From positions 124,001-188,000 of IMG/VR virus record IMGVR_UViG_3300031963_000006: 64,000 nt of DNA. The stretch is one strand, 5' to 3'. Both the position numbers and the translations under genes were made by a program. Below the pieces are notes generated by a model that worked only from the letters and a program-made list of their open reading frames with translations, was not told where the DNA came from and searched no databases. This document shows positions 18,587 through 60,697 of this stretch, one piece after another; position 1 is the stretch's first letter, and every line of letters begins with the position of its first letter.

Positions 18587-18616
18587 AACCACGTATTAAG
18601 TACGTGGTTTTTTTTT
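18587..18616 (+). terminator. Intrinsic terminator between convergent genes
   Basis: AACCACGTA-TTAAG-TACGTGGTT followed by a T run. Confidence 0.75.
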
Positions 18617-21600
18617 ATGGTGTTACGGACCAATTTCTACCGGCACTTGTTAAAGTTGTTTTACATGCTATTCCAGCGGGTGATGGACTTGAGTTTGGAT
18701 TAGCGGTACCAACAGCATTAGATAATGTTAATGTACCATTTGTTAAACTGGTGCTATTTGCCAAGTTACATAAAATAAAATCAACACTACTTTGATTCAA
18801 AGCGCAGTTTCCGGCAATAACTCTCTTTAAAGAAGTTGCACTTGCAAAAGAAATTGACCAATTTACAATAGGATTTATCGACATAGTTAATGCAGTTAAT
18901 GATGTTGGGAAAGTATTTCCTAATGGTAAAATGTTATATTGGTTATTTATTTGATTTGATGAAATATTTAAATCCGCAACTTGTATTGATGAACTAAAAT
19001 TAGTTATCGTTGTTATAAAATTATTACTTAAATTTAATGTGAAGTTAGATGCGGTGGACAAATAGCTCATATTAAACGTGGTTAAATTATTATTAGTTAA
19101 AGAAACTAATTTAACATTAGATGGAAAGTTTTGAGTCCACGATGATAAAGAAACACCGTTTAATAAAAATGTTTGTAGATTAGGGCTAGTCGTTAAAGTT
19201 TGAGTCCAAGTGGGGATAGTGTTTATGCCTCCTCCGACACTTCCAGTAACTGTGTTAGCGTTAAAATAAATTAAACTGGTTGGTAATGTCACAGGTAGAG
19301 AAGTTAAAGCGTTAGCTTCTAAATTTAAAGTTTGTATTGAATTCGGTAGAGGTGGTATAGTAGTTAATACGTTATAAGATAAATTTAAAGTTATTAATGA
19401 AGTACAAGATATTATTGTGTTAGTAAAAGTGTTTATTCTATTATTATTTAAATCAAGTGTTTGGAGTAAAGTATTTGAGGTTAAGTTTATTGTGAATGAT
19501 GATAAACCAAATAGTAATGGGTTACCTGTATCTCTATTTTGAACCATACTAATGGTCTTAACACTAGCGGGGAAGTTATAAGTCCATCCGGTTAATCTGT
19601 TTCTATCAAAATTCACATTCTCTAAGGTTGTACAACTTAATAAACCATTTGGAGCATCAAAAAACTTTAAATTATTTTGACCTGAAGAGTTATAAACCTG
19701 AAAATCTCTAAGACCTGGAGGAGGTATTAATGTGAAATTAACTAATTGAGTGTCCGCAAATAAAACGAAAAGTATATTAACACTAGTCCAAGATGATAAA
19801 TTATGACTAAAGTCTGTAAAATTACTATTCCAAATTTGGAAATTATTAATTCTAATTCTACTAGATAAATTAAATGAATTTAACTCTAAATTTGGATTGT
19901 TGTGGTTAAAAAATCCTATTCTTGTGAATACACTATTTACAACATCAATACCTGATAAATTAGAGAAAGTACAAAATTCAAATCTTAAATTAGATATTGA
20001 TGACCAACTATCAAATGTGCCTGGGTTATCTATTACTTTTGATATTCTTCTAAAAGTTATTGCACCAATTGTTCCTGATGTTTGAAAAATTCCGTTTAAT
20101 TGATAATCGGCAAATGTTGCGGTATATAACGCCGAATTATAAGTTTTACTTGTTGTGTGAGTGGTAGTATTTGGTAAATTAACACCAAAAGTTTGACCAT
20201 CACCCAAATCAACATAAAACTTTTTAGTTCCACTTCCAAAATCTTGTCTAACCTCCATTGGATTTGAACCGACCACATTTTGAACTTGCCAAAATGGGCT
20301 TGAACCTGTGAAACTTCTACCAATACATTGTGGTGATTGTGAGGCTCCTTTAACTCCGGTTACACCTATATTAAAAGTTGTTGTTGCTGTATATGGTGGG
20401 TCTGAATTTACATTGAAAACATCACCAGTACTTTGGTCGATAAAGTAAAATTCATTATTTATTTGATAAATAGCATTTGCGTCTGTAATATTTGGTGTTG
20501 GAGGGTTTGGGCAATTTGTGCATCCTATCTGTATCTCAGGGAAGTCTCTTAAATTAGTTATATAGTCATGTTGAGTAATATAGAAGAATGTAGGAGTACC
20601 TGGATTTGTTTGGGTAAATATAACTTTATTATTTGTGGTCAATAAAATATCACCAGTAACTGTATTTGGGGTGAGTAAACTTCCTGGTAAATTAAACATC
20701 GACACAAAACTTGAAGTATTATTAGGGAATGGGTTTAGAGTGATTTTAATAATTCTATTTGGATTAACCAAAGTTTCACTACCAATTAAAGTATTTGAAT
20801 TAACCGCAACTAAACCTTTGCCTAAGAATGAAATACCAGGAGGGAAACTTATATCCCTGAAAGAACCAACCGTAAATGGCGTTAATGAAGTTATTATCCA
20901 TTCTCTAATAAAAATATTACCAGAACCAGGGCCACCATATAGCCAAAGTTTACCTGTTTGAGAACCTGGGTCCCAGTAATGGGCAATATCCTCGGAATTG
21001 AAAAATCCTGGTATTATTATTTCAGATAGTGTATTACCAATTGGGTTAAAGTAATATATTTTTGTTGAGGTGTTGACCAAAATAAAACAATCATCTAAAA
21101 TAACTGGTGGTTGATATGGGTTAGTTGGAGTTGGGGTTGGAGTCGACGTATTTGTAGGGGTTTGAGTTTTAGTAGGGGTTTGACTTTGAGTTGGTGTTTG
21201 AGTTTGAGTTTTAGTAGGGGTTTGACTCTTAGTTGGAGTTGATGTTTGGGTCGGTGTTTGAGTTGATGTTTTTGTTGATGTTTGGGTTGATGTTTGGGTT
21301 TGGGTCGGTGTTTGTGTTGATGTATTTGTTGGAGTTTTAGTTTGCGTAGGGGTTTGAGTCTGTGTTGGAGTTGGGGTCGGAGTTGGAGTAGATACGGCAA
21401 AAACTTCAGTGACACAAGAATAAACACTTGCGGCGTCTGGTGGATTATACTGTAAAGGATTTGTGTAATATGTATTTACATCTCCTAAATAAGATATATT
21501 TAAAGGATTTGAAGCTTCAACTTGTACGATTCTACCTGTATAAGAAATTACATAATAAAATCCGTTCTCGTAGAATAAACCTTCGGCAGTTTCCATTATA

Positions 21601-23519
21601 GGATTAACACCCGATATTGGGAAAAAAGAAGTTATATCGACTAATGTTTCAATAACTCCTGTATAATAATCATACTGAACTAAAACTCTTTTTTGTTCCT
21701 CAATTGGTTCCATAGTACTGCAACCTAAAACGGCAATGAATTTTCTTGGAGTAGTGTCTGTTACTATAAAGTCATAAACAAAAATTCCTCTATTAGGGTT
21801 ACAAGGATTATCTGAAGTACCATATGGATTATTATTATTTCCAAAACCGGCGGTATAACTAAATCTTAATACCGCGGAAGAAGTGGCGTCCCCTAAATTA
21901 GGAATTGAACTTGGAGTTATCTCAAATACTTGATTTGGGAAAAACGCATTGTTGCCAACAAGAACTAACCTACTTAAACCTCCTTCATCAAAAGATGCGA
22001 ACCCTCTTTGGTGACCTATAGAACCATAATAAAATCTCTTACTAAATGTTGCAACAAATGGACAACGAGTATAATTAATTTCATTTATTATTATTCTAGC
22101 TGGTAAAACATCCAAAACTCTTTGTATTACCCATATTTTATTACTAGACATTGCAATATCAAATGCTGGGTAACCAAATTCATATGAGTTATCAGGTATT
22201 GGTAATTCTATTGTGGTTAACGAAGGTGCGTCAACGGCTATTATCCTAATAAAATAATTAGGGTCAGGTTGGAATGTTGAATTCCAAATACCTGTTCTAT
22301 AGATAGAAATACAATCACCAAGACAAAATGCCGTTGGAGTAGGTGTTTGAGTTTGTGTTGGAGTTTGAGTTCTAGTTTGTGTCCGTGTAGGAGTTTGGGT
22401 GTTAGTAGGGGTTTGACTCTTAGTTGGAGTTGATGTTTGGGTCGGTGTTTGAGTTGGTGTTTTAGTTTGAGTTGATGTTTGTGTTGGTGTTTGTGTTTGG
22501 GTAGGGGTTGGGGTAGGAGTTGGTGTTGAACATACAATAGAGTTACTCAACAGACAGGTAGGACAATCTGTTTGTAGAGTAATTGTATCGGTTATACCGT
22601 AATTATAATTGTTTAATGCTGTACTAATTGATGTTGTAAATGTTGCACAACCAGTATAACTTGAATTGGTTATGTAATAAACGTTGTTATTTACCAAACC
22701 TGTAAATATTATATTTGGTAAATTAAATATTTGAAAAGAATTATTTGGAGGGCAACAATCTAAGAAAAATGCGTTCTCAGGCGGATAACTAGTAGGTGTG
22801 GGTGTTGGTGTTTTAGTTTGAGTTGGTGTTTTAGTTTGAGTCGATGTTTGTGTAGGTGTTTGAGTTGATGTTTGAGTTGATGTTTGTGTAGGTGTTTGTG
22901 TAGGTGTTTGTGTTGATGTATTTGTGGGAGTATTAGTTTTAGTTGGTGTTGATGTTTGGGTTGATGTTTGGGTCGGTGTATTAGTTGGTGTACTGGTTTT
23001 AGTTGGAGTTTGAGTTTGAGTTGGAGTAGGTGAATTATTAGGAGTTGGGGTTGGAGTTGATGTTTGTGTTTGTGTTGGGGTTTTAGTTTGAGTATTAGTT
23101 GGAGTTGATGTTTGTGTTTGGGTTTTAGTTTGGGTGTTAGTAGGTGTCTGTGTTTGTGTTGGGGTTTTAGTTTGAGTTTGTGTTTGAGTATTGGTTGGAG
23201 TTTGTGTTTTAGTTTGAGTATTAGTAGGGGTCTGTGTTTGTGTTTGTGTTGATGTTTTTGTGGGTGTTTGTGTTTTTGTTGGAGTGGGTGTTTGTGTTTT
23301 TGTTGGAGTGGGAGTTGGAGTCGGGGGAAGTAGAGTAAAGTTACAACCTAAACCATAACCTTCAAAATAAACTTCATATGTACCATAGATATAATCCGCA
23401 GTATAGTAATACGGTATTAACTGAGGTCCAATATTTACAGTGCCACCTGTATAAGGATAAAATATAATATCACCTATTTGACCATTAAAATTATTGGAAC
23501 TTATTAAAACTGTTGGCAT
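18615..23519 (-). CDS. 1634-aa modular protein: Thr/Pro/Gln linkers, Cys module, two propeller-like domains, PKD-like segment, C-terminal leucine-rich repeats
   Basis: Three TPTQT linkers; LQTLDLNNNRI, LITLNLSYNVLTTIPPLPNSIQTLNLEANAL are LRRs; FYVDLGDG PKD-like. Confidence 0.75.
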   Translation of the reverse strand: MPTVLISSNNFNGQIGDIIFYPYTGGTVNIGPQLIPYYYTADYIYGTYEVYFEGYGLGCNFTLLPPTPTPTPTKTQTPTPTKTQTPTKTSTQTQTQTPTNTQTKTQTPTNTQTQTQTKTPTQTQTPTNTQTKTQTQTSTPTNTQTKTPTQTQTSTPTPTPNNSPTPTQTQTPTKTSTPTNTPTQTSTQTSTPTKTNTPTNTSTQTPTQTPTQTSTQTSTQTPTQTSTQTKTPTQTKTPTPTPTSYPPENAFFLDCCPPNNSFQIFNLPNIIFTGLVNNNVYYITNSSYTGCATFTTSISTALNNYNYGITDTITLQTDCPTCLLSNSIVCSTPTPTPTPTQTQTPTQTSTQTKTPTQTPTQTSTPTKSQTPTNTQTPTRTQTRTQTPTQTQTPTPTAFCLGDCISIYRTGIWNSTFQPDPNYFIRIIAVDAPSLTTIELPIPDNSYEFGYPAFDIAMSSNKIWVIQRVLDVLPARIIINEINYTRCPFVATFSKRFYYGSIGHQRGFASFDEGGLSRLVLVGNNAFFPNQVFEITPSSIPNLGDATSSAVLRFSYTAGFGNNNNPYGTSDNPCNPNRGIFVYDFIVTDTTPRKFIAVLGCSTMEPIEEQKRVLVQYDYYTGVIETLVDITSFFPISGVNPIMETAEGLFYENGFYYVISYTGRIVQVEASNPLNISYLGDVNTYYTNPLQYNPPDAASVYSCVTEVFAVSTPTPTPTPTQTQTPTQTKTPTNTSTQTPTQTQTSTQTSTKTSTQTPTQTSTPTKSQTPTKTQTQTPTQSQTPTKTQTPTNTSTPTPTPTNPYQPPVILDDCFILVNTSTKIYYFNPIGNTLSEIIIPGFFNSEDIAHYWDPGSQTGKLWLYGGPGSGNIFIREWIITSLTPFTVGSFRDISFPPGISFLGKGLVAVNSNTLIGSETLVNPNRIIKITLNPFPNNTSSFVSMFNLPGSLLTPNTVTGDILLTTNNKVIFTQTNPGTPTFFYITQHDYITNLRDFPEIQIGCTNCPNPPTPNITDANAIYQINNEFYFIDQSTGDVFNVNSDPPYTATTTFNIGVTGVKGASQSPQCIGRSFTGSSPFWQVQNVVGSNPMEVRQDFGSGTKKFYVDLGDGQTFGVNLPNTTTHTTSKTYNSALYTATFADYQLNGIFQTSGTIGAITFRRISKVIDNPGTFDSWSSISNLRFEFCTFSNLSGIDVVNSVFTRIGFFNHNNPNLELNSFNLSSRIRINNFQIWNSNFTDFSHNLSSWTSVNILFVLFADTQLVNFTLIPPPGLRDFQVYNSSGQNNLKFFDAPNGLLSCTTLENVNFDRNRLTGWTYNFPASVKTISMVQNRDTGNPLLFGLSSFTINLTSNTLLQTLDLNNNRINTFTNTIISCTSLITLNLSYNVLTTIPPLPNSIQTLNLEANALTSLPVTLPTSLIYFNANTVTGSVGGGINTIPTWTQTLTTSPNLQTFLLNGVSLSSWTQNFPSNVKLVSLTNNNLTTFNMSYLSTASNFTLNLSNNFITTITNFSSSIQVADLNISSNQINNQYNILPLGNTFPTSLTALTMSINPIVNWSISFASATSLKRVIAGNCALNQSSVDFILCNLANSTSLTNGTLTLSNAVGTANPNSSPSPAGIACKTTLTSAGRNWSVTP
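21211..21265. repeat. 55-bp exact direct repeat, copy 1
   Basis: ttagtaggggtttgactcttagttggagttgatgtttgggtcggtgtttgagttg, identical to 22402-22456. Confidence 0.9.
22402..22456. repeat. 55-bp exact direct repeat, copy 2
   Basis: Identical to 21211-21265; offset 1191 bp = 397 codons. Confidence 0.9.
22790..23330 (-). repeat. Low-complexity coding repeat ([12 protein letters not shown] linker)
   Basis: Degenerate 6-nt-period repeats encoding alternating Thr; boundaries approximate. Confidence 0.85.
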
Positions 23520-23534
23520 CTATACGTTTTGTAT

Positions 23535-23542
23535 TATAAATA
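23535..23542 (-). promoter_or_regulatory. Putative late promoter TATTTATA (minus strand)
   Basis: TATAAATA on + strand, 15 nt upstream of the minus-strand ATG at 23519. Confidence 0.55.
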
Positions 23543-23552
23543 CTTTATTTTT

Positions 23553-24821
23553 CTAATTACACTGATTTGATGTTATTGTAAGTCCCATTTGATAATAAGT
23601 TTGACCACTGCAATTCACCATATATGAATTAGTTGTACCTGTAACCGTTACAAATTGTATTGTTGTTGGGTCAACTAAATTTTTTAATGAACCGTCCCAA
23701 GCTTGAATACCTAATTCACTAGCCACATGGTCAATTCTACAGGCAAAACCAAAATTTCCTCCACCCGCAAAATTTAAACCAACAATTTTCCAAATTCCAC
23801 TAAAGTCGGCGATAAGAGCTGAACCTGAATCACCTCCAGCTATTGGGTTTAGACATAAAGATGATAAACTTGGGTCGTTTTCGGGTCTAACAAATGCTAT
23901 TAAATCTGAAAAATAAGCCGTGACAATATTACCTTGCATTTTATACCCACTAATTGGTTGAGTGGTGCCCAAAGAATAAACTCTTAAAGGACACGTTGGA
24001 GCTTGTTTTACGCCGGTTGTTCTTCCACTACTATATAGTATTGGATTTGTACTTAATAATAAATCAATTTCTGCGGTACTGGCAAATGGGATTGGAGTTG
24101 TGTTTCCTGTTAGTCCGTATTGTTTATAAGATTCGGTTAAACTTAAAATTGGAGTCCCACTTAATGATATTAGAGCACCATCTACTTTATTATTTGTTGT
24201 GAACCCCAAGTAAATTGGTACGTATCTTACTACTTGACCTATAATGTTTTGAGGAGGGCCCAAAGGACTTTCACCGGGTTGGTACGCTAAATCTACTTCT
24301 AATGAGCCGTTATCGTTTAAATTATATTCATTAAAAATAACTCCACCCAAATTTCTTTGTGTTGTGTAAAAAGCATCTTTTATTACCACATGATTATTTG
24401 TAACCCCCACTAAACTCTGTGTTGCAATATCTACGGCAACAAATCCCAAAGTACCAACAAACCCTAATTTACTTTTAGACGTTAAAGAAATGCCACCCTG
24501 AACTGGCCTGATATATAATCTATTAGGAGGAGGATTAGTTATCCAAAGATTACATTGAGGATTACAAGCTAATACCTCAATTTCACCAACTTCAACAACA
24601 TCCATAAAGTAAGTTTTATTATCGATAGTAATTGGTTCATTTGGTAAAATTTCCTCAGGAAATAAATTAGATAATTTTTTTTTCTCAGGTACAAAAAATA
24701 TTATGGATTCTTTTCTAGTATCAATACCATTTGATATTTTGAATCCATAACCAACACCTACATTATTTGGGGTTTTTAGGTTAAACTCCTCTATAATTTT
24801 TTTTAAATTTTCTGTTAACAT
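23553..24821 (-). CDS. Trypsin-like serine protease with Nal1-type N-terminal domain
   Basis: Intact triad TNNHV / VDGAL / GGDSGS; N-terminal VGVGYGFK...IIFFVPEKK...DVVEVG pattern as in Nal1-like proteases. Confidence 0.8.
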   Translation of the reverse strand: MLTENLKKIIEEFNLKTPNNVGVGYGFKISNGIDTRKESIIFFVPEKKKLSNLFPEEILPNEPITIDNKTYFMDVVEVGEIEVLACNPQCNLWITNPPPNRLYIRPVQGGISLTSKSKLGFVGTLGFVAVDIATQSLVGVTNNHVVIKDAFYTTQRNLGGVIFNEYNLNDNGSLEVDLAYQPGESPLGPPQNIIGQVVRYVPIYLGFTTNNKVDGALISLSGTPILSLTESYKQYGLTGNTTPIPFASTAEIDLLLSTNPILYSSGRTTGVKQAPTCPLRVYSLGTTQPISGYKMQGNIVTAYFSDLIAFVRPENDPSLSSLCLNPIAGGDSGSALIADFSGIWKIVGLNFAGGGNFGFACRIDHVASELGIQAWDGSLKNLVDPTTIQFVTVTGTTNSYMVNCSGQTYYQMGLTITSNQCN

Positions 24822-24826
24822 TTTTT

Positions 24827-27800
24827 CTAAAAAGGTTTTGAATTAAATTTAGTAAATATTGTGTTTATATTAGTTGGTATATTAGTAGGTGTTAAAGTTG
24901 GGGTAATTGTTGGAGTTGGTGAAGGAGGGTTTATGTTTACACAGTATAACCTAAAATTGTAATCTGCGGTTGATGTGTAACCGGACCCCAAAATTGTTGA
25001 TATTACTTTTACATATACTTCGGATGGGGAAGAAATGTTCTTCATAAAAGTTGAAAATCCTGTAGAACCTCCGGCAATTGGAGAACCATTTAAGTATTCT
25101 ACCCATGGACCATATAATAGAGCGTTATCAGACCTAAAACCAGTATCTATAACTATTTGGTTATTCCAATATACTATAAACCTATCAGGGTATGTATTAG
25201 CGCTAAATTCAAAGTAAACTTGACCTATTTGAGAGCCTAAATTGTATTTAAATAGGTTACTTCCCATGTTATTTGTAGGTGAAATTAGATTTCCGCAGTT
25301 AACCAAATAATCTTGATAACAATTTATTTTGGTCACGGCGTTTAACAATGGAACATTTACACCATTATTATAGTAGTATAAGTTTGACCACGAACTAATA
25401 GAAACCCCTATAGAATTCGGGGAGTTTGTATATGTTCCGGCCGATGAGAAGGCTGAAGTATATATATTACCATCACAACCTAAATATTGTAAATAAACCC
25501 TACCATTCCAAACAGGTACTGAATTTCCAACTGCATTGTCTAACATTTGTTGTGTTATGGTTACTTGCCAATTAAAACAACCATTATTACAATTATTTGG
25601 TGTTAAAGTTGGAGTTGGTGTAACAGGTATCGGGTTAAAACTAGAACAAACAATTTCCATCGTAGAACCCCCAAGAGGGCTACCGTCTGAATAATTAAAT
25701 GTTAAACTAGTATAAGGGTTTGGTGAGGAAATTTTATATTCACCACCACCAGTACCAGGTTCTGGTAATGTTGCAATAGTGTTACCTGAAATTTCTTGAT
25801 AACACCATGGACCAACTAAAGTTATTGTAACCGGACCTGAATCACTCGTCACTACAAAAGTTTCTCTACTTGACCAACCAATAAAGTCAGACATAGTTAT
25901 TCTGAAAACTAAATTATTCATTGGTTCACTAAAATTCAGTGTGTATAATGTTGGAGTACATTCAATTGGACCACCTGGAGGGTTCTCTCTACAACCTATC
26001 CATACAGTATCTGAGTTTTCGTATACACAACTAGTGTGAGTCCATAATTGTTCCGCATAACCACTACCAGTGGCTGTTATTAATATCCCGTAATAATTTA
26101 CATAACCACCAATAACAGGTAATTTACCTACACAACCAACTGGGGTTTGTGTTGGTGTTGGAGTTGGGGCGATATTATAACAATAGTTTTGACGTGTAAA
26201 GGCAGAATTTACATAAATTGTAAAATTATTTTGAGTATAATAAACTTGCGGAGTTCCACCTAAAGGGACACCTGATAAATTAGGATAATTATTATAAACT
26301 CCTGAACTAGTATAATTTTGAATTTTTTGTAATCCATCACATCCTACCCATCTTACATAAATAAGTCCATTAATAATTGGATTAGTATTACCAGATGCAC
26401 TTAAAATATATTCCTCTAATATATTTACCGTCCAAGCAAAACAATTTTGACAATTATCTCCATTAGTAGGCGTTATTGTTGGTGTTAATGTTGGTGTTGG
26501 TGTTAGAGTTGTATCTATAATCTCAACAACTAAAATATCACATTCAGGGTCCGGAGTCGGAGTCGGGGTTGGCGTAGGAGTTTCGGTTGGGGGAGGGCTC
26601 TTTTCTGGTGTTAATGAAGGTGTTTGTGTTTGTGTTGGTGTTTGTGTTTGTGTTGGTGTTTGGGTTGATGTAGGAGTTTGACTTTTTGTAGGAGTTTGAC
26701 TGTTTGTTGGAGTTTGAGTCTGGGTATTTGTAGGTGTGTTAGTTGATGTTTTTGTTGGTGTTTGTGTTTTAGTTTGAGTTGGAGTGTTGGTTGGAGTCTG
26801 ACTCTGAGTTGGGGTATTTGTCGGAGTTTGAGTTTGTGTGTTGGTTGGTGTCGGAGTTGGAGTTTCTGATACTTCAGGTGTTCGTGTAGGAGTTTTAGTT
26901 TGGGTTTGAGTTTGGGTTTGAGTTGGAGTATTGGTTGGTGTTTGTGTTGATGTTGGTGTTTGTGTTTGGGTATTAGTTGGTGTTTGAGTTGATGTTTTTG
27001 TTGGTGTCTTAGTTGGTGTTTGAGTCTTAGTTGGAGTTTGTGTTTGAGTAGATGTTTTTGTTTGAGTTGGGGTGGATGTTTTAGTCGGAGTATTACTCAG
27101 AGTTGGATTTGGAGTTGGTGTTTGCGTAGGTGTTTCAGTCGGTGTTTGAGTTGACGTAGGAGTTTGAGTTTTTGTTGGTGTAGGGGTTTTTGTTGATGTT
27201 TTTGTTGGGGTTGGAGTTGGTGTTTCTGTGGATGTATTAGTTGGCGTATTTGTTGGAGTTTTAGTTGATGTTCTTGTTGGTGTTGGGCTATCAGTTGGTT
27301 GTGGTGTTGGGGTTGGAGTACTTGTTGATGTTGGAGTTTCAGTTTTAGTTGGAGTTGGAGTTTTAGTATTAGTTGGAGTTTTTGTTGAAGTTTTTGTAGG
27401 GGTTACTGTTGGCGTCGAAGTTTTAGTTGGAGTTTTAGTTTGAGTTGGACTTATTGTGTTTGTTGGGGTATTAGTTTGAGTCGGAGTCTGAGTTTTAGTT
27501 GGAGTTTTAGTTTGAGTTCTGGTTTGAGTTTGTGTTTTAGTTTGTGTTGGGGTTTGAGTTACGTCAGGAGTCGGAGTTTGTGTTTGAGTCGATGTTTTAG
27601 TTGGAGTTTTGGTGGGTGTTTGTGTTCTAGTTTCAGTTCGTGTTTGTGTTTGTGTTATTGTATTTGTGGGAGTATTTGTTGGGGTTTGAGTTGTTGTTGG
27701 GGTTTGAGTATTAGTTCTTGTTGGAGTTCTTGTTGGAGTTTTTGTAACACAAAATGTTTGAGTTGGAGTTGGTGTTGGTAAATCGTTATTGGTAGGTGTT

Positions 27801-28498
27801 TGAGTTTTAGTTGTGGTAACAGTTGGAGTTACGGTATTTTGAGGAGTTTTTGTTTGAGTTCTAGTCTTTGTAGGTGTTTGAGTCCTTGTTGTTGTATTTG
27901 TAGGAGTTTTCGTTGGAGTTGGAGTTTTTGTAGGAGTTTTTGTTTGAGTCTGAGTTTTTGTTGGAGTTTTTGTTTGAGTTTGAGTTATGGTCGGAGTTTG
28001 TGTTACGGCTCCTGGAGCTCCTCCTGGACAACAATAAGATGTTGTTGAACATTCTGCATTAGGCAATAAAAATTCCGTAAAATTTGTAGGGTAATCCTCG
28101 GTACTAAAAGAAATATCCTGAACTAAACCACAAAAAGTGTATTCAACTAAATTAATAGGGTCCAAACAATTTGATAAACATATTGTAATACGCCATAAAT
28201 CAAAAGGTTGTGTGTTGGTACCTAAGGTGACATATCTATTAATACCAGCACAACAATCGTATACCTCGAAAACGTCTTGAGGGATAAATGATTTAAAATT
28301 TTGACAATCGGAAGCAACTAATTTTACCCCTACTTCAGGAGAATTTTCATAAGGGTAGGGTACTGTGATATCTATTGGTTTTGATGTGTAAGTAATAACT
28401 CTTGAAACAAATACACAATTTTCACCATTTGGTTCACAAACATAAATGTCATAAGGTGCCGTTAAACCTGATATGTCTGTTATTTTAACTGTTGCCAT
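24827..28498 (-). CDS. 1223-aa mucin-like modular protein (about 500-aa Thr/Pro/Gln stalk, duplicated Cys domain)
   Basis: N-terminal PYDIYVC module, long TPT stalk, two C..CF.W.V.I...NG..Y....GCDG repeats. Confidence 0.75.
26470..28010 (-). repeat. About 1.5-kb low-complexity coding repeat (Thr-X dipeptides)
   Basis: Extreme G+T skew on + strand; encodes ([10 protein letters not shown])n; boundaries approximate. Confidence 0.9.
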
Positions 28499-38693: not shown

Positions 38694-39494
38694 ATGAAAG
38701 AAAAAAACACCGGTATTCCAATTAATCAAGAAGAAATTCAACATTACCTAAAAGATATTCGTAAAATTAAGGTTATGACCCCCGAGAGGGAACGTGAGTT
38801 GGCTAAGATGATTCAATCTGAAAATCTAACCAAACAACAACGAGATGAAATCAACCAAGAAATTTTGGAAGGTAATCTCAGGTTTGTTATCACGGTGGCA
38901 AAACAATATCAAAATCAAGGTTTGGATTTTCCTGACTTGATTGCCGAGGGTAACTTAGGACTATTGAAAGCCATTCAAAACTTTGATTGGAGTAAAAACT
39001 TGAGGTTTATATCATATGCGGTTTGGTGGGTTAAACAATCTATCTTACAGTCCCTCAACGACAACGCTCGTACTATTCGACTTCCAGTAAATGTGGTTCA
39101 GGACCTACAACGAGCAAAGAAAGAGGTGGAATCTAAGGGTGGTAAATTGGATGAGAGATTTGAAATGTTACCGTCTATTATTGATTTGGATATGAACATC
39201 AATGAAGAAGGTGATACTTTGGTTGATGTTATTAAGAACGAAGACGCGGATATGCCTGATGCGGTGTTTAATAACAAAGACGTTCTTAAGATGGAACTAG
39301 TTGGATTGTTAAACGTTTTGGATGAGAGAGAACGAATAATCATATTGGATTATTTCGGACTATCAGGTACACCAAGAACACTCGAAGACATAGGGTCTGA
39401 CTTTAATTTGACGAAAGAGAGAGTACGACAAATTAAAGAAAAGGCTCTAAGAAAACTGAGGAACGAAAGTTCGGTTTTGTTCGACTACATGTAA
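38694..39494 (+). CDS. RNA polymerase sigma-70 factor, Bacteroidota primary-sigma-like
   Basis: NLRFVITVAKQYQNQGL..DLIAEGNLGL, RFISYAVWWVKQSI, ARTIRLP, TLEDIG..FNLTKERVRQIKEKALRKLR; lacks region 1.1. Confidence 0.92.
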   Translation: MKEKNTGIPINQEEIQHYLKDIRKIKVMTPERERELAKMIQSENLTKQQRDEINQEILEGNLRFVITVAKQYQNQGLDFPDLIAEGNLGLLKAIQNFDWSKNLRFISYAVWWVKQSILQSLNDNARTIRLPVNVVQDLQRAKKEVESKGGKLDERFEMLPSIIDLDMNINEEGDTLVDVIKNEDADMPDAVFNNKDVLKMELVGLLNVLDERERIIILDYFGLSGTPRTLEDIGSDFNLTKERVRQIKEKALRKLRNESSVLFDYM

Positions 39495-47239: not shown

Positions 47240-47280
47240 ACTAAATAATAAGAATCATTAAATAATATTAAATATTGATT

Positions 47281-48207
47281 ATGAGTACTGAAAGTTATTA
47301 TGACATTTTAGGTGTTTCAGAAACCGCAACACAAGATGAAATTAAAAAGGCGTATAGAAAGAAGGCGGTAGAACATCACCCTGACAAAGGTGGGGATGAA
47401 CAAGTATTTAAAAAAATATCAGAGGCGTATGATACGGTAGGTGATGAGAATAAACGCAGACAGTATGACGCTCAGAAAAATAATCCGTTTGGAGGAGGGT
47501 TCAATCCTTTTGAAGACTTTTTCTCTCAATTTGGAGGAAGACAACAACGTCAACAAAGACCTCAAGTACCTGATAAGGTTGTAAATCTTGATGTTACGGT
47601 TATTGAATCTTATTTGGGTGTTGATAAAACTATTAATTATAGTCGTAAACACGCTTGTAATACTTGTAGCGGTAGTGGGGGTGATAGGAATACCTGTAGT
47701 AAATGTAATGGACAAGGTTTCGTTACAGTTAGAATGGGTAATGGAATGTTCATTCAAATGATGCAACAGATGTGTGATTTATGTGGAGGACAAGGTTCTG
47801 TATTGACAAGGAGATGCGGTACTTGTAACGGACAAGGTACAAGGTCTGAAATGGAAAGTGTGACATTCAAATTACCGCACGGCTCAGACAACGGTCAATT
47901 CTATAGAATGAATGACTTAGGTGATTATCACAATGGTTTTTACGGAAACTTAGTTATTAAAGTCAACTTGGTTAATTCCGATAACTTTGAAAAAATGGGT
48001 AATGATTTAATTTATAACTCTTACCTCAATTTAGATGATTTAAATAAAAATTCTGTTGGTGTTCCTCATCCTGACGGTGAAATGAGAGTTAACTTTCCTT
48101 TAGAGTTTGATACATCAAAACCCCTTAGAGTAAAATCTAAAGGGTTCAAAAATGGAGGTCAAGGAGACCTTTATGTAAAATTGTTCGTTAAGTTTAAAAG
48201 AGGTTGA
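47281..48207 (+). CDS. dnaJ: DnaJ (Hsp40) chaperone, class A
   Basis: J domain with HPD, short G/F region, four CxxCxGxG motifs, C-terminal GDLYV; ATG 47281. Confidence 0.95.
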   Translation: MSTESYYDILGVSETATQDEIKKAYRKKAVEHHPDKGGDEQVFKKISEAYDTVGDENKRRQYDAQKNNPFGGGFNPFEDFFSQFGGRQQRQQRPQVPDKVVNLDVTVIESYLGVDKTINYSRKHACNTCSGSGGDRNTCSKCNGQGFVTVRMGNGMFIQMMQQMCDLCGGQGSVLTRRCGTCNGQGTRSEMESVTFKLPHGSDNGQFYRMNDLGDYHNGFYGNLVIKVNLVNSDNFEKMGNDLIYNSYLNLDDLNKNSVGVPHPDGEMRVNFPLEFDTSKPLRVKSKGFKNGGQGDLYVKLFVKFKRG

Positions 48208-48457: not shown

Positions 48458-49300
48458 ATGTTAAGCTATATAGGAGGAAAATCAAAAATAGGTAAGTGGA
48501 TAGTTCCATATTACCCAACTGACATGGAAACATACGTGGAAACATTCGGAGGAATGTTTTGGTGTTTCTTTAATATGGATTTGAAACAATATCCCAACCT
48601 AAAAAGGGTTGTTTATAATGACTTCAATCCGCTAAATTACAATCTGTTTATGTGTTTACAGAACCCAACAGTCTTGTTAAACGCAATAAATAATATACCT
48701 TGCCAACAACAAGGAGTTGAGGAGACACCGTCAATCTATCGAGAACAGTTTAACACATTCCAAAAAGAAATATTTGGAGATGGATTTACAATAAACTATC
48801 CAGATTATGATGTCGCCGCTAAGTATGCGTATGTTCTTACACAAGTGTTCAGTGGGTCAAAACCTGAAACAAGTTCGTTTATTGATTTGAAGGGTAAGTA
48901 TAAATCAAAGTATCTTACGTTCAGAGACAAGTTATCAAAGCCTGATTGGGTGGAACACTTTAACAGGATAAGTCATTTTAGATTGGGGGATTTTGAGAAT
49001 GTCATTAAGGAGTTCGATAGCCCAACAACTTATTTCTATTTGGACCCCCCGTATTGGAAGACCGAGAATTATTATTCAAATCACGACTTTGACCGTGACG
49101 ACCACGAGAGACTGGCAAATGTGTTGAAAACTATTGAAGGAAAGTTTTCGTTATCTTACTATGATTTCGTACTTTTGCACGAGTGGTTTCCTGAAGACCA
49201 ATATAGATGGGAAAAGAAAGAATTTGCTAAGGCCGCGGCCGCCAAAAAAGGACAGACCCAAAATATGGGAGAGGAACTACTTATTATGAATTATTTTTAA
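48458..49300 (+). CDS. Dam-like (D12 class) N6-adenine DNA methyltransferase
   Basis: YIGGKS, YVETFGG, YNDF, YLDPPY, ELLIMNY. Confidence 0.9.
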   Translation: MLSYIGGKSKIGKWIVPYYPTDMETYVETFGGMFWCFFNMDLKQYPNLKRVVYNDFNPLNYNLFMCLQNPTVLLNAINNIPCQQQGVEETPSIYREQFNTFQKEIFGDGFTINYPDYDVAAKYAYVLTQVFSGSKPETSSFIDLKGKYKSKYLTFRDKLSKPDWVEHFNRISHFRLGDFENVIKEFDSPTTYFYLDPPYWKTENYYSNHDFDRDDHERLANVLKTIEGKFSLSYYDFVLLHEWFPEDQYRWEKKEFAKAAAAKKGQTQNMGEELLIMNYF

Positions 49301-53928: not shown

Positions 53929-53966
53929 GCACAATGGTGATATTTATACAAAAGACACCAATGAGC
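53929..53966 (+). promoter_or_regulatory. Late promoter TATTTATA inside a start-codon-occluding hairpin
   Basis: GCACAATGGTG (53929-53939) pairs imperfectly with CACCAATGAGC (53956-53966); TATTTATA at 53941-53948 lies in the loop. Confidence 0.55.
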
Positions 53967-54620
53967 ACAGAAAAAGGAAAAATATACAAAATAACAAACT
54001 TAGTTAATGGTTTGATTTATATTGGGTGTACTGTGAATCCAATCAAACACAGATTCGAAGAACATTTGTATAGATGTCTCAAAACTGATTATAAGTCAAA
54101 GTTATACAATTCAATAAAAAAATACGGTAAAGAAAATTTTACTATAGAATTGATTGAAGAATGTGACTTGAATATTATTTACGAAACCGAAAAAAAATAT
54201 ATTGAAAAATATGATACTTTTAAAAATGGTTTAAATTCAACATTAGGAGGAGAAGGTTGTTTAGGATATGTTCATTCTGATGATATAAGAAAAAAAATAT
54301 CGGAAAATACTAAAAAAGGAAATTCTCATAAAGGAAAGACTTATGAACAATTATATGGTGATAGAGCCGAAGAGGAAAAATTAAAAAGGAGAGAAAATTC
54401 GGAATGGAAAGAAATGACCGAAGAAGAAAGAAAAAAAAGAGTAGAAAATATTAAAATTGGAAATAGAAAAAAATCAAAGTACAGTTTTGAATTAGTAAAA
54501 GAAATTAAACAAAAAATAAATGAAGGGTTCAAAATAAAAGAACTTAAAAAATTATATCCCCAAGTCTACGAAAATTTTTTCTATGATTTGAAAAATAATA
54601 GAAGATGGTCGGATATATAA
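53961..54620 (+). mobile_element. Free-standing GIY-YIG homing endonuclease (Seg-like, NUMOD3-like DNA-binding motif)
   Basis: KIYKITNLVNGLIYIGCT, conserved R, E and N of GIY-YIG; HSDDIRKKIS; ATG 53961 preferred over 53934. Confidence 0.85.
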
Positions 54621-55233: not shown

Positions 55234-55758
55234 ATGAACCTTTCTTTTAGAAAAAAAGGAGTATTACACGTACCTGTCAACTCATGGGAGTTGGATGATG
55301 GTAATACCGTTGTTATATATCAGGGTTCGCGTGGTGCGAATCCTGATTTAGATTTTATTGTCAAATATAAAGCTCCGAATAAAAGATTGAGAGCACCATC
55401 CCATACTCATTGGATTGTTGATTTAATTATCAAATCTAAGTTTGCTCCCGATGAACTATGTTTATTTGTAAATGAATGGATTGAACTCTATGATGTTATT
55501 GAACCGTTCAAAACGGTTGAAGAGAGGGGTAACTACCAATTGATATATAAAGACTACTTCAATGAAAAACATTTTACGTTAGATAATTTGGGAGAATTTT
55601 CACTCGAGTTTGTTTCTACACTTATTGAGTTATTTATACGTTGTGAAAAACAAACGCCAAACGCGTTCATGTTCAAAAATCTACTCCAACTCATGAGTGA
55701 TTATTGTCAAAATAAAAAAGATTTCTATCAAGTCGTATCTTACTCAAAAAGAGTTTAG
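55234..55758 (+). CDS. Hypothetical protein
   Basis: 174-aa ORF; RLRAPSHTHWIVDL and CEKQT look like conserved motifs of unknown family. Confidence 0.6.
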   Translation: MNLSFRKKGVLHVPVNSWELDDGNTVVIYQGSRGANPDLDFIVKYKAPNKRLRAPSHTHWIVDLIIKSKFAPDELCLFVNEWIELYDVIEPFKTVEERGNYQLIYKDYFNEKHFTLDNLGEFSLEFVSTLIELFIRCEKQTPNAFMFKNLLQLMSDYCQNKKDFYQVVSYSKRV

Positions 55759-56579
55759 ATAATATACAACTCTGAAATTCTATCTTTAATCAGCCAAGGT
55801 TTGGTTTCTAATTGACTATCAATTTCTTTGGACAAGTCGTACTTCTTAAGTGTTGTATTTCTGAATCTTTGTATATTGAAGTCAAATACATCTAAAACCA
55901 TTGAACGAACTTGTTCAGTTAAGTATGGAGATGAGGAGATAATCTGAATATCTAAATCACTGTTATCGTCTTTAATATCACTGATTTTAAATGTAATCTT
56001 ATCTGTCTTGATTGATGAGAATAATTGGTTACAAATATATTCAGAATAATACATATGGGCTCTCCCAGTATCTAAACCATAACCATATGGGAATTCTGAT
56101 GTAACACATATGAAATTTTCAGTGAAAAAAGAATTGGGTTCAGGTAAATCGTTGTATTCCAAATCAAACGTTAATTCTTTTTTAAAGTCTAAACTGTTGA
56201 AGGTTAATTCTTTGTGATTATATACATAATTCAGTACTCTATCATGAAACATCGGACGAGGAGTACTGTGAAATTCAAAATAGTATTCGTAAGTTTCTTT
56301 CCAATAACTCTCATCATATTTTATCAAATCAATGGTATTGAGTCTTTCATAATTTAAATCCACCATAGTTTGTTTATTCTCCTCGTAAAATCTTTCTTTG
56401 AGTTCAGTTAAATCGATTACGTTTTTTGATTCAGTTTTACCCGCAACAATCAAAAAATTTTTGAAATCAGAAACTTCAATTATCGTTTTATATTTTTTTT
56501 CTTTCTGAATCTCACAAAGAATAAAATCCGCAAACTTATTCACAATACCTCTTCTCGATTTTGGATTAATGTACCTCAT
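55755..56579 (-). CDS. Degenerate S-adenosylmethionine synthetase (MetK)-derived protein lacking catalytic motifs
   Basis: By-eye alignment to MetK N-terminal and C-terminal segments (see findings); GHPDK, GAGDQG and GGGAFSGKD absent. Confidence 0.65.
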   Translation of the reverse strand: [274 protein letters not shown]

Positions 56580-56636
56580 ATAAAATGTTTTTGAAATAGA
56601 TAAACAAAAAAATTCAAATCCTAAATACTTTAAATT

Positions 56637-56662
56637 AAAAAAGGGGTCAAAACCCCTTTTTT
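56637..56662. terminator. Bidirectional intrinsic terminator
   Basis: AAAAAAGGGGT-CAAA-ACCCCTTTTTT. Confidence 0.8.
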
Positions 56663-56676
56663 AATTTTTCGAAAAA

Positions 56677-56838
56677 TTACTTTTTGTAGTATTTCTCCAC
56701 TGTCTTCCTAATAGACTCCTGAATATTTTGATTGTTACTCGGTGGTGGAGCCTGTTGAGGTTGAGGTTGTGGAGGAACCTGTTGACCCAACGGTTGAGGT
56801 TGAGCCTGATTACCTTTGTTTTTACATCCGCATCCCAT
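56677..56838 (-). CDS. 53-aa MGCGCK / Pro-Gln-rich peptide missed by the ORF track
   Basis: MGCGCKNKGNQAQPQPLGQQVPPQPQPQQAPPPSNNQNIQESIRKTVEKYYKK; upstream minus-strand TATTTAT (56868-56874) and downstream terminator. Confidence 0.7.
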   Translation of the reverse strand: MGCGCKNKGNQAQPQPLGQQVPPQPQPQQAPPPSNNQNIQESIRKTVEKYYKK

Positions 56839-56924: not shown

Positions 56925-58325
56925 ATGATTATGACAAAAAGTCTTAGTTTTAAAAATACCGTAAAAAATATATTGATAGAACAGAATGAAGAAGAGTTCT
57001 ACAAAATTTCACCTGAAGAGTTTACAGAACTAATGAAGTTTGGAAGTTATAATGGTAAAGGTGTGAGTAAACTTAAAATGTTCGGAGGTAAACCAATATG
57101 GATTACTGGTAATTTAGATTTGTCAAATACACCAACAGACTCGTTGGGTAATGTTAAATATGTTGAGGGTAGATTAGATATCAGTAGAACAAATATTAGT
57201 GATTTGTCAGGTGTTAAGGTTAAAGGGTATATTTGGGATGGAGGTTCACCTATTGAAAAAAAGAGACTTGCGGCCATTTTAAAGGAAAAGATGAGAGAGG
57301 CCGATGAAAGAAGACAAAGAGATGAATGGAGTATAGATGGAGGAGACGAAATAGGTTTAAGAGCCCAAGCGTTATATAAAAATTTGATAAATGATGAAAA
57401 AATTTTCGCCCCAACAGGAGAATACGTAGGAGAAATAGAAGGTTTAAAGGCCGACTTGGAGGAATTAACTATTAGGTATAATGAAACTGAAGGGGAAGAC
57501 GATGAATTATATAATAAGATAAGTGATATAGAAGAGAGAATTAACGAACTCCAACAAGGAGTGGTGGATGTATATAACATAGTACCAATGAATTATAACT
57601 ATTATGGTTTACCTCAGTTTGAAGTTATTGGTGTTGATGATTTAGTAGGGGAAGAATATGCGGTTGGTGATGAAAGTGAAATGGATGCCGCGGCACTTCA
57701 ATACGCTAAAAATTATCTTGATGAAGCCGGTGTTGAAGGTTTAAGAGATTATTTTATTGAGGACAATTTAGATACCGATGCGATTGAACAATATTTCAGA
57801 GATTTTTATGATGATGATGTTAGGAATAATCTTGAGGTTTATTTTGACGAAAGTGAACTACCTAACACAGAAGAACAAGAAGAAAGGAAACAGGAATTAG
57901 AGGAATACATTGACAAAGCAGAAGGAGTAGTTAAAAAATTTGAACAAAAACAAGAAGACCTTAAAAATAAAATTGAAGACCCCGATGAATATACTAAACA
58001 GTATAACGAGATTCAATCAAAAATAGATATCATTCAAAATCATATTGATAACTCACAAGAGGAAATTGATAATATAGAATCCACAGGACAGATAACTGAG
58101 GAGATGATTGAAGAAAAGATTGAGGATATGGTATCAGATAAAATGAGTGACCCGAGGGGTTCTTTATCTGAATTTGGTATGGATATTAGTGAATATGTTG
58201 ATATGGATTCACTGGCTGAAGCGCTTGCTGAAAGTGATGGATATGAAGTATTAGCATCTTATGATGGAAGTTATGATGGTGAATACATTGACAACAAGTT
58301 TTACTACGTAATCAGAGTTAACTAA
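56925..58325 (+). CDS. Very acidic protein with short LRR-like repeats and coiled coils, putative head-internal protein
   Basis: NILIEQ leader; ITGNLDLSNT / VEGRLDISRT repeats; TATTTAT at 56920-56926 suggests start 56931. Confidence 0.6.
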   Translation: MIMTKSLSFKNTVKNILIEQNEEEFYKISPEEFTELMKFGSYNGKGVSKLKMFGGKPIWITGNLDLSNTPTDSLGNVKYVEGRLDISRTNISDLSGVKVKGYIWDGGSPIEKKRLAAILKEKMREADERRQRDEWSIDGGDEIGLRAQALYKNLINDEKIFAPTGEYVGEIEGLKADLEELTIRYNETEGEDDELYNKISDIEERINELQQGVVDVYNIVPMNYNYYGLPQFEVIGVDDLVGEEYAVGDESEMDAAALQYAKNYLDEAGVEGLRDYFIEDNLDTDAIEQYFRDFYDDDVRNNLEVYFDESELPNTEEQEERKQELEEYIDKAEGVVKKFEQKQEDLKNKIEDPDEYTKQYNEIQSKIDIIQNHIDNSQEEIDNIESTGQITEEMIEEKIEDMVSDKMSDPRGSLSEFGMDISEYVDMDSLAEALAESDGYEVLASYDGSYDGEYIDNKFYYVIRVN

Positions 58326-59701: not shown

Positions 59702-59847
59702 ATTTGATTTGGTGGGTGTTTGTTTTTTCAATATTTTTTTATCCATTGTTTATATTTGTGGTAATTTATACTAACAAATATCCAAACAATAGATTTTCGA
59801 AGTGGTGGAAAAAACACATTATAGATAAAAATGAAAATTATGATTGA
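59698..59847 (+). CDS. 49-aa membrane peptide missed by the ORF track
   Basis: MNLIWWVFVFSIFFYPLFIFVVIY...FSKWWKKHII; ATGA-coupled to DUF3310. Confidence 0.5.
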   Translation: MNLIWWVFVFSIFFYPLFIFVVIYTNKYPNNRFSKWWKKHIIDKNENYD

Positions 59848-60697
59848 AAACTATATAAATAAAGTAATTAACGGAGATTGCATCAAAGTTATGGGTGAAA
59901 TGCCCGAAGGTTCTATTGACTTGATTGTTACTAGTCCACCCTATGGAGTGAACATTGCATATGACACCCATGATGATGATATGGAAATTAATGAGTATCT
60001 TGAGTTCAGTAAGAACTGGCTAACCGAGGCTTATAAAGTTTTGAAAGACGATGGAAGAATTGCCTTGAATATCCCCTACGAGATTAACCGTCAAGAAAAG
60101 GGTGGTCGTATATTTTTTGTATCCGAGGTTTATCAGATTATGAAACAAATTGGATTTAAATTCTTTGGAATTGTTGACCTTGAAGAGGATAGTCCCCACA
60201 GAAGTAAGACAACGGCTTGGGGTAGTTGGATGAGTCCGTCAAGTCCATATATCTATAACCCAAAAGAGTGTGTAATACTTGCATATAAGAAAAACCACAT
60301 TAAGAAAGTTAAGGGTCAACCACAATGGAAGGGCGAACCAATAACAACCGAGGAAGGTAAGACAAAGATGTTGTACACCGAACAGGACAAAAAGGAATTT
60401 ATGGAATTGGTGTTCGGGCAATGGAAGTATCTTAATGACTCAAGACCACTAACCAAGGCAACTTTCTCAATGGACATCCCAACCAAGGCAATTAAGATAT
60501 TGTCATATAAGAATGACATAATATTAGACCCCTTCAATGGTAGTGGAACAAGTTGTGTGGCTGCAGAAATTTTAGATAGAAGGTGGATTGGTATTGAACT
60601 TTCTGAAAATTATACTAAAATTGCTACAGAAAGGATACAATCTTTCGTTGACCAAAAAAGGCAACAAGTTTTAGAGTTTGAAAATGGGGGTGAATAA
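59831..60697 (+). CDS. Beta-class N4-cytosine/N6-adenine DNA methyltransferase
   Basis: DLIVTSPPY precedes ILDPFNGSGT and IGIEL. Confidence 0.9.
   Translation: MKIMIENYINKVINGDCIKVMGEMPEGSIDLIVTSPPYGVNIAYDTHDDDMEINEYLEFSKNWLTEAYKVLKDDGRIALNIPYEINRQEKGGRIFFVSEVYQIMKQIGFKFFGIVDLEEDSPHRSKTTAWGSWMSPSSPYIYNPKECVILAYKKNHIKKVKGQPQWKGEPITTEEGKTKMLYTEQDKKEFMELVFGQWKYLNDSRPLTKATFSMDIPTKAIKILSYKNDIILDPFNGSGTSCVAAEILDRRWIGIELSENYTKIATERIQSFVDQKRQQVLEFENGGE

Follow-up and report, generated by a model that had tools for sequence, protein, structure and literature searches.

The stretch of DNA analysed here, referred to as the window, is 64,000 nucleotides (nt) long and covers positions 124,001 to 188,000 of the IMG/VR virus record IMGVR_UViG_3300031963_000006; unless another locus is named, coordinates below are those of the window. 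On its minus strand, at 55755..56579, lies the coding sequence (CDS) of a pseudoenzyme with the fold of MetK, the S-adenosylmethionine (SAM) synthetase. The open reading frame (ORF) starts with ATG, encodes 274 amino acids (aa) plus a stop and is intact, as an earlier sequence-only reading of this DNA had noted; both the ORF list and the translation bear this out. The gene is part of a short island that is transcribed against its surroundings and consists of a micro-ORF, a terminator, a leader of ~60 nt and the MetK-like gene. A gene for a 174-aa protein (55234-55758, plus strand) converges on the MetK-like gene, the two stop codons overlapping by 4 nt, with glutaredoxin (Grx) and thioredoxin (Trx) genes beyond it, and on the other side of the island a gene for a 466-aa coiled-coil-like protein is transcribed divergently.

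Alignment of the family divides the protein into lobes. The N lobe (residues 1-95; 56295..56579, minus strand) is homologous to the MetK N-terminal domain according to hhalign and the conservation table, and its conserved residues are M1, I4, S8, G11, N14, A17, D18, I20, F42, G47, T49, F64, N81, D84, I86 and Y88. The central lobe (residues 96-160; 56100..56294, minus strand), delimited from the family alignment and the entropy table, is reduced, differs among deep lineages and is mostly deleted in short forms of ~231 aa. The C lobe (residues 161-274; 55758..56099, minus strand), which hhalign relates to the MetK C-terminal domain (PF02773), is without the hairpin and the GGGAFSGKD P-loop of MetK. 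It begins with the family signature SEFPYGY(S/G) (residues 161-168; 56076..56099, minus strand), located within the most constrained stretch of the protein, residues 158-185. This signature occupies the place of MetK PTGRFVIGGP, with F163 corresponding to MetK F231 in a low-confidence part of the alignment; as SEFPYGYSL it is the strongest family-specific motif, and it has no MetK counterpart. Across the deep lineages, conservation is concentrated at residues 1-20, 42-49, 81-88, 161-184, 226-239 and 260-266, and residues 89-160 are variable and largely absent from the ~231-aa forms. The family has a median isoelectric point (pI) of 5.0, with a net charge of ~-11 over 274 aa; these values are unremarkable, and the idea that the protein is a DNA mimic was rejected.

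Fold, homology to MetK and loss of catalysis

An AlphaFold (AF2) model of the window protein, built on a 56-sequence alignment of the family, reached a predicted local distance difference test score (pLDDT) of 93.8 and a predicted template-modelling score (pTM) of 0.91. The sequence-only reading had proposed that a structure comparison should lead to MetK, and the top 50 matches of this model in the PDB, as found with Foldseek, were indeed all MetK or methionine adenosyltransferase (MAT) structures (E 3e-11 to 8e-10, probability 1.00), with query template-modelling scores (TMq) of 0.57-0.66 and 8-12% sequence identity to these SAM synthetases. A 232-aa short-form member, 35% identical to the window protein, gave a pLDDT of 91.8 and again matched MetK/MAT only (E 4e-9); because the short form also folds confidently and has no other matches, the MetK fold is considered a property of the whole family. 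TMq values over the long and short forms against MetK/MAT were 0.55-0.68, and the three intertwined beta-alpha-beta-beta-alpha-beta lobes that define the MetK fold are predicted in both models.

Homology was also assessed by aligning a profile of the family with a profile of MetK. The latter contained E. coli, Vibrio, other gammaproteobacterial and phage-borne MetKs, 10 sequences in all with an effective number of sequences (Neff) of ~2.3; phage MetKs were used for depth, as a dedicated MetK homologue search gave only proteins that were at least 87% identical except one at 63%. Because this profile is shallow, the hhalign probabilities are probably depressed. In the N-terminal comparison, which was run separately, family residues 11-77 aligned with MetK 18-85 (E=7.1e-5, probability 63%), and in the C-terminal comparison family residues 171-268 aligned with MetK 271-374 (E=1.5e-3), an alignment that contains the GR..YYSEYI.N block, the pairing with MetK LLVREFFDL, and KPWL.KD opposite FPWEKTD. 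In permutation controls, shuffled MetK profiles scored 9.9-13.0 for the N part, where the real score was 28.7 and was reached by none of 310 shuffles, and 13.3-15.2 for the C part, where the real score was 30.9 and was reached by none of 295; the standard deviation of the shuffled-profile scores was 2-2.8 in these controls, and 0/605 shuffles in all attained the real scores. Both pairings have the same register as those drawn by eye in the sequence-only reading, whose E. coli MetK strings agree with the MetK sequence from NC_000913.

Less came of the comparison with Pfam profiles that had been proposed at the same time. The window protein alone matches no Pfam model even at E<=10, and support from this source is confined to relatives, 12 of the 56 family members touching PF02773 weakly (best E 3e-4). 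Single-sequence searches with the window protein were empty for Pfam, PHROGs, PADLOC and PDB sequences, INPHARED searches by DNA and by tblastn found no relatives in GenBank phages, and a search of the ESM Atlas returned noise only, with scores of ~0.5. When the family profile was compared with PDB sequences, the sole match was a SAM synthase, in the region that had been aligned by eye. Taken together, the profile alignments and the structure predictions confirm that the 274-aa protein has the MetK fold and is genuinely homologous to MetK, though very divergent from it.

This homologue has lost its catalytic motifs, as had been claimed from the window sequence. None of 201 full-length family members carries GHPDK, GAGDQG, GRK..VDTYG or GGGAFSGKD, the four motifs that are present, fragmentary rows aside, in the ten control MetKs. 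Residue numbering here counts Met1, so His14, Asp16 and Lys17 of the literature are H15, D17 and K18. Confident alignment begins at G11, which replaces MetK K18; the assignments of H15 to family S8 and of D17 to family R/K10 are in-register extrapolations from that point. Further along, MetK E56 corresponds to the variable family position 48, K270 to N/D/S170 and D272 to G172, the GAGDQG methionine-binding loop (Asp118, literature numbering) falls in an alignment gap, and MetK 237-269, which includes D239, R245, K246 and the P-loop, is without a family counterpart in what is a low-confidence part of the alignment, of which the motif counts are independent. For comparison, the features of a functional SAM synthetase include Glu55/Gln98 and a triphosphate/metal site made up of D238, R244, K245, K269 and D271 (literature numbering). 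The protein had also been called internally deleted; it is indeed shortened relative to MetK, though not by one single deletion, since the losses are spread along the protein and affect the GAGDQG/gating-loop region, part of the central lobe, and the hairpin plus P-loop of ~33 residues (MetK 237-269).

The positions that are retained are MetK-invariant and non-catalytic. Thus MetK D21 corresponds to family N14, D25 to D18, G55 to G47, D64 to D56, R273 to R173, Y277 to Y177, Y281 to Y181, E332 to D230, D335 to D233, and P367-W368 to P261-W262, and it follows from these residues and the lost motifs that the scaffold has been preserved and the catalytic function lost. Judged from the alignments, the elements that bind ATP, methionine, Mg2+/K+ and triphosphate are all lost, and because they are, the protein cannot make SAM and must now do a job other than SAM synthesis.

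Analysis of substitution patterns indicates that this job is one that selection maintains. In IMG/VR, 79 of the 80 copies encode an unbroken protein of 268-281 aa; in the remaining one (L020; IMGVR_UViG_3300008267_000598, 4001-4766), which is otherwise 100% identical, 56 nt are missing at CDS position 234 and the frame is shifted, owing either to natural loss of the gene or to an assembly error. The ratio of non-synonymous to synonymous substitution rates (dN/dS, or omega), estimated by the Nei-Gojobori method, has a median of 0.23 across 176 pairs and lies at 0.06-0.12 in the closely related ones. Pooled by region over 27 close pairs, which are phylogenetically non-independent, omega is 0.08 in the N lobe, 0.11 in the central lobe (within sublineages) and 0.10 in the C lobe, and it falls to 0.03 over residues 158-185, the SEFPYG...YYSEY block. 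The MetK-like gene is functional and under strong purifying selection, and the frameshifts or neutral evolution among homologues that would have counted against the sequence-only reading are not what these data show. Because a MetK homologue whose motifs are lost is nevertheless under such selection, it is a pseudoenzyme rather than a decaying relic.

Distribution, expression signals and genomic surroundings

The family is large and confined to phages. There are 144 matches in a set of 5.8 billion proteins and 194 representatives at 50% identity in a set of 1.8 billion, all of them at most 281 aa and none MetK-sized, and IMG/VR holds 417 loci, with relatives down to ~25% identity, on contigs of 260-330 kb; the contig to which the window corresponds measures 321 kb. 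Sequencing runs that hold the window sequence are from lake, river and other aquatic samples. No relatives were found in 185,579 species-representative bacterial and archaeal genomes, so prophages give no clue to the host. Other clues, weak but consistent, suggest that the host belongs to the Bacteroidota: one relative encodes a protein with a domain of the CHU_C/type IX secretion system (T9SS) type, the nearest cultured match of the primase is from a Flavobacterium phage (30% identity), and the leaders of the MetK-like genes (43 distinct loci) have no evident Shine-Dalgarno sequence.

Within its clade the gene is not a sporadic accessory. When loci were reached via the neighbouring 466-aa gene, 66 of the 68 with enough upstream sequence carried the MetK-like gene, and its divergence keeps pace with that of its neighbours (35-42% identity compared with 30-66%); for these reasons it is regarded as a core gene, inherited vertically in an uncultured freshwater phage clade with genomes of 260-330 kb. 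The two exceptions are L145, which has a GIY-YIG insertion near the contig end, and L163, which has unrelated ORFs; the possibility that they contain hidden divergent members of the family was rejected, as the slots are taken up by that insertion or those ORFs. The GIY-YIG gene of L145 (L145:1177-1968) adjoins the homologue of the 466-aa gene. Down to 35% identity the same gene order is kept: the micro-ORF and the terminator are followed by the MetK-like gene, with an additional gene of ~340 aa between them in some genomes, and the block is flanked by Grx/Trx and by proteins of ~460 and ~260 aa.

The island has expression signals of its own. A promoter-like leader (56580..56637, minus strand) contains a conserved cTATTTA box and a cTAT(t/c)aATTT(c/g) box, as defined from 43 distinct upstream sequences. 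This motif was looked for elsewhere in the window and not found, so no regulon or timing class can be assigned from it, and an Rfam scan of the leader revealed no riboswitch or other family, a sub-threshold sraA match falling on the terminator hairpin. This intrinsic terminator hairpin, AAAAAAGGGGTTTTGACCCCTTTTTT (56638..56662, minus strand), separates the micro-ORF from the MetK-like gene, and most of the 43 upstream sequences contain a corresponding GC hairpin followed by a run of T. The micro-ORF (56677..56838, minus strand) encodes 53 aa that comprise MGCGCKNK, a Q/P-rich linker and IQESIRKTVEKYYKK. In relatives the micro-protein has 46-62 aa and the pattern M(G/S/A)CGCKNK, Q/P-rich linker, IQESI(K/R)KVVEKYYKK; it has no family match, and in 76 of 80 loci its ORF immediately precedes the MetK-like gene, a constant pairing that may be functional. 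Among RNA runs, one clear metatranscriptome touches the glutaredoxin region only, and two others are probably DNA of relatives.

Of the flanking genes, that of the 174-aa protein is the best-conserved neighbour (66% identity to the copy in relative L011), is absent in relatives L012 and L013, and has no family match. The extra gene found between micro-ORF and MetK-like gene in some relatives encodes 338-347 aa (L012:4587-5630, L013:4932-5948); its copies in L012 and L013 are 31% identical and have no credible family match, only a weak REase_II-like one (E=0.002). The idea that either gene is an operon partner of the MetK-like gene was rejected, as both lack family matches and are absent from part of the clade. 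A GIY-YIG homing-endonuclease-like gene (53934-54620, plus strand) lies between a 105-aa gene and thioredoxin; it is missing at that position in L011 and looks like a mobile insertion. A 177-aa ORF at 57047-57580 (minus strand) lies wholly within the 466-aa plus-strand gene and has equivalents of ~195 aa in relatives, and most probably represents a shadow ORF, not a gene.

The region from 31 to 64 kb of the window contains replication and host-takeover genes, among them those for a primase, SbcC, SbcD, a sigma-70-type factor (38694-39494) and a full DnaJ chaperone (47275-48207). The two DNA methyltransferases that the sequence-only reading called orphan are real, one being of the D12/Dam class (48458..49300) and the other of the N6_N4 class (59831..60697). 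Glutamine synthetase is also carried by relatives L011 and L013. The block of large ORFs at 1-31 kb has no named PHROG match. Strand composition in the window is extreme at 22001-24000 (GC skew +0.36, AT skew -0.18) and at 26001-28000 (GC skew +0.59, AT skew -0.41), stretches that lie inside the giant minus-strand ORFs 18615..23519 (1634 aa) and 24827..28498 (1223 aa), which share PHROG 15511 and probably encode repetitive proteins.

Candidate roles of the MetK-like protein

The lobes of MetK are tied together by helices on the outside of the molecule, and the dimer interface is made by the sheet face. When the family is placed on this architecture through the alignment, its specific invariant residues (S8, G11, G47, T49, N81, D84, Y88 and SEFPYGYSL) are predicted to map to strands and loops of the MetK active-site/dimer face, and those it has in common with MetK (N14/D21, D18/D25, R173/R273, Y177/Y277, Y181/Y281 and D230/E332) lie mainly in helices and caps; because the two sets are distributed in this way, a rebuilt binding face fits better than mimicry of the MetK interface. 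The invariant residues of the sheet face include acids, hydroxyls and aromatics. Because there is no conserved Lys/Arg/His cluster or Gly-rich loop among them and D84 and E162 are conserved, the site is taken to be acidic and phosphate-poor. As read from sequence, this conserved set argues against a phosphate-rich ligand and is compatible with a cationic or nucleoside ligand or with a protein partner.

The reading favoured here, tentatively and as a possibility rather than a probability, is that the protein is a non-catalytic binder, probably a homodimer of the MetK style, that acts on SAM-linked host processes. It would act by binding rather than catalysis, the former active-site/dimer face having been rebuilt into a new, rather acidic and phosphate-poor binding site, most probably between the two subunits of the homodimer. 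The site could accommodate a small SAM-family molecule that carries positive charge or is of the adenine-nucleoside type, or it could bind a partner protein; the role would be the modulation of SAM-linked host processes in early or middle infection, where sequestering or sensing of a ligand seems more likely than co-assembly with host MetK. Also counted in favour of a binder are the gene's own expression signals 3' of the terminator and its replication and host-takeover surroundings with two SAM-dependent methyltransferases. Several points weigh against it. The placement of the conserved residues on one face depends on the MetK alignment and on strand alternation, the equivalence of F163 and F231 belongs to a low-confidence part of that alignment, a homodimer is assumed on the grounds that the MetK fold universally behaves in this way, and stoichiometric sequestration of a molecule as abundant as SAM would need very high expression.

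Next in probability, and unlikely, is the proposal of the sequence-only reading that the protein is a decoy or poison subunit. Since MetK active sites are built from residues of both subunits, such a protein could co-assemble with newly made host MetK via the dimer face to give dead hetero-oligomers and lower SAM, blunting SAM-dependent defences such as type I and type III restriction-modification (R-M) and bacteriophage exclusion (BREX). Retention of the MetK fold with all of its own catalytic residues gone would suit a decoy, as would the precedent of the T3 SAMase, a phage protein that inhibits MetK directly (bioRxiv 10.1101/2023.02.27.530186), and the rule by which catalytically dead paralogues control their active relatives through the formation of heteromers (PMC5201418). 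However, identity to MetK is only 8-12%, the shared residues lie mainly in helices, which are outside the MetK interface, and the residues of the sheet face are family-specific, the strongest motif, SEFPYGYSL, having no equivalent in MetK. In addition, the family has lost two elements that contribute to MetK interfaces, the hairpin plus P-loop and a large part of the central lobe, and the short forms that keep the MetK fold show the central lobe to be dispensable. A decoy would also leave pre-existing MetK dimers untouched and would compete with the needs of the phage, whose own two DNA methyltransferases require SAM, and the MetK-like gene belongs to the syntenic core instead of residing in a variable anti-defence island. 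The location of the shared residues in helices and the core-gene status thus somewhat weaken the decoy proposal.

It is also doubtful, ranking after a decoy, that the fold has been reused as a rigid protein-protein module unrelated to SAM, a scaffold or adaptor in, for example, replication, host takeover or assembly. A core, syntenic gene that evolves at the rate of its neighbours, retains no ligand-binding motif and is constantly paired with a conserved micro-ORF is what such a role would lead one to expect. However, the gene lies outside the large-ORF block, and its few near-invariant residues form short blocks that look like a site rather than a broad interface. A tight residue cluster is also an argument for a new enzyme, which is rather unlikely and stands behind a scaffold in the ranking: S8, T49, N81, D84, Y88, S161, E162 and Y165 could form a new active site for a nucleoside, amino-acid or sugar-like substrate, since these near-invariant polar residues are tightly clustered, omega is lowest around SEFPYG...YYSEY, and the gene, part of the core, adjoins nucleotide and redox genes (Trx and Grx, for example). 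Against this, no recognisable catalytic motif emerged from the Pfam, PHROG, PADLOC and PDB sequence searches, there is no conserved His/Lys/Cys or metal-binding set, and pseudoenzymes that lose loops usually become binders.

Two further proposals are improbable. In one, the protein would be an activator comparable to a prozyme, binding host MetK off the active-site face and raising SAM for the phage methyltransferases that modify a genome of 320 kb. Two such methyltransferases lie within ~6 kb and occur in relatives too, the carriage of genuine metK by other phages indicates that boosting SAM can be useful to them, and prozymes provide a precedent (PMC5201418), but no requirement of bacterial MetK for an activator is known, and mimicry of the interface is as weak here as for a decoy. 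In the other, to which we give slightly less credence still, the protein would be a high-affinity sponge, or a sensor, for a SAM-derived immune signal, for which SAM-AMP is the obvious candidate. SAM-AMP, made from SAM and ATP in Bacteroidota, is the second messenger of CorA-linked type III CRISPR and was first found in Bacteroides fragilis (PMC10600005, PMC12255297). Finally, that the gene is a non-functional relic or a chance ORF, a view to which the single copy among 80 with a 56-nt deletion might lend itself, is refuted by the 79 intact copies, an omega of ~0.1, the 417 relatives extending to ~25% identity and the confident fold.

Comparison with known systems

Few enzymes are as highly conserved across life as MetK, and SAM is already established as an object of conflict that sets phages against R-M, BREX and type III CRISPR signalling. 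The MetK-like protein has the same three-lobed fold as MetK (EC 2.5.1.6; PF00438, PF02772, PF02773; E. coli MetK, PDB 1xra, 7r2w), collinear N- and C-terminal homology and a common scaffold of D25, G55, D64, R273, Y277, Y281, D335 and PW367-368. It differs from the enzyme in being ~110 aa shorter, in its reduced or deleted central lobe, in the absence of GHPDK, GAGDQG, GRKIIVDTYGG and GGGAFSGKD, in the lack of a Pfam match for the window protein, and in being found only in phages; a functional SAM synthetase would score above the gathering thresholds of PF00438, PF02772 and PF02773, which the window protein does not. Genuine phage MetKs, present in 138 phage records and exemplified by those of Streptococcus phages Javan320 and phi-SsuNJ2 and Staphylococcus phage UPMK_1, are likewise phage-borne members of the MetK superfamily. 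Yet these typically share 45-65% identity with E. coli MetK across at least 95% of its length and keep the catalytic motifs, whereas the MetK-like family, with 8-12% identity in structural alignment, keeps none. Full-text literature searches did not find a described MetK/MAT pseudoenzyme or non-catalytic family with the MetK fold, and the family is a new branch of the MetK superfamily that is phage-specific, non-catalytic and shortened.

The T3 SAM lyase (gp0.3) cleaves SAM and also binds and inhibits MetK (PDB 8bb1; bioRxiv 10.1101/2023.02.27.530186). By analogy, and if the MetK-like protein were a decoy, both would be phage proteins aimed at the host SAM supply; their folds are unrelated, the Foldseek match in 8bb1 being to the MetK chain, and no SAM lyase fold or sequence was detected in the window protein by PHROG, Pfam or PDB-sequence matches. 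Phage second-messenger sponges and SAM-AMP lyases that counter type III CRISPR (PMC10600005, PMC12255297) offer an analogy in so far as the protein may be a non-catalytic binder of a signal derived from SAM or adenosine in a Bacteroidota host, and have no relation to it in sequence or fold. If it were a SAM-AMP sponge, it would be the first anti-CRISPR to have been built from a biosynthetic enzyme stripped of its chemistry, one that formerly bound the two molecules from which SAM-AMP is made, and either such a sponge or a MetK poison subunit would represent a new counter-defence principle in jumbo phages.

A further parallel may be provided by the prozymes of trypanosomatid S-adenosylmethionine decarboxylase (AdoMetDC) and deoxyhypusine synthase, which are dead paralogues that heterodimerise with their enzyme and activate it (PMC5201418, PMC3663545). 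Like them, the MetK-like protein is related to an enzyme of the SAM pathway, is no longer catalytic and is retained by selection, and the family combines loss of catalytic residues with purifying selection in the manner of a prozyme. The prozymes differ in being cellular paralogues with shown heterodimerisation, whereas here the active counterpart would be the host enzyme. An abundant family (417 IMG/VR copies, 194 clusters at 50% identity) keeps a fold and discards its chemistry, which makes the pseudo-MetK a clean case study of the evolution of a binder from an enzyme and, because SAM is a battleground of phage defence, a testable handle on the way in which large Bacteroidota phages cope with SAM-dependent processes.

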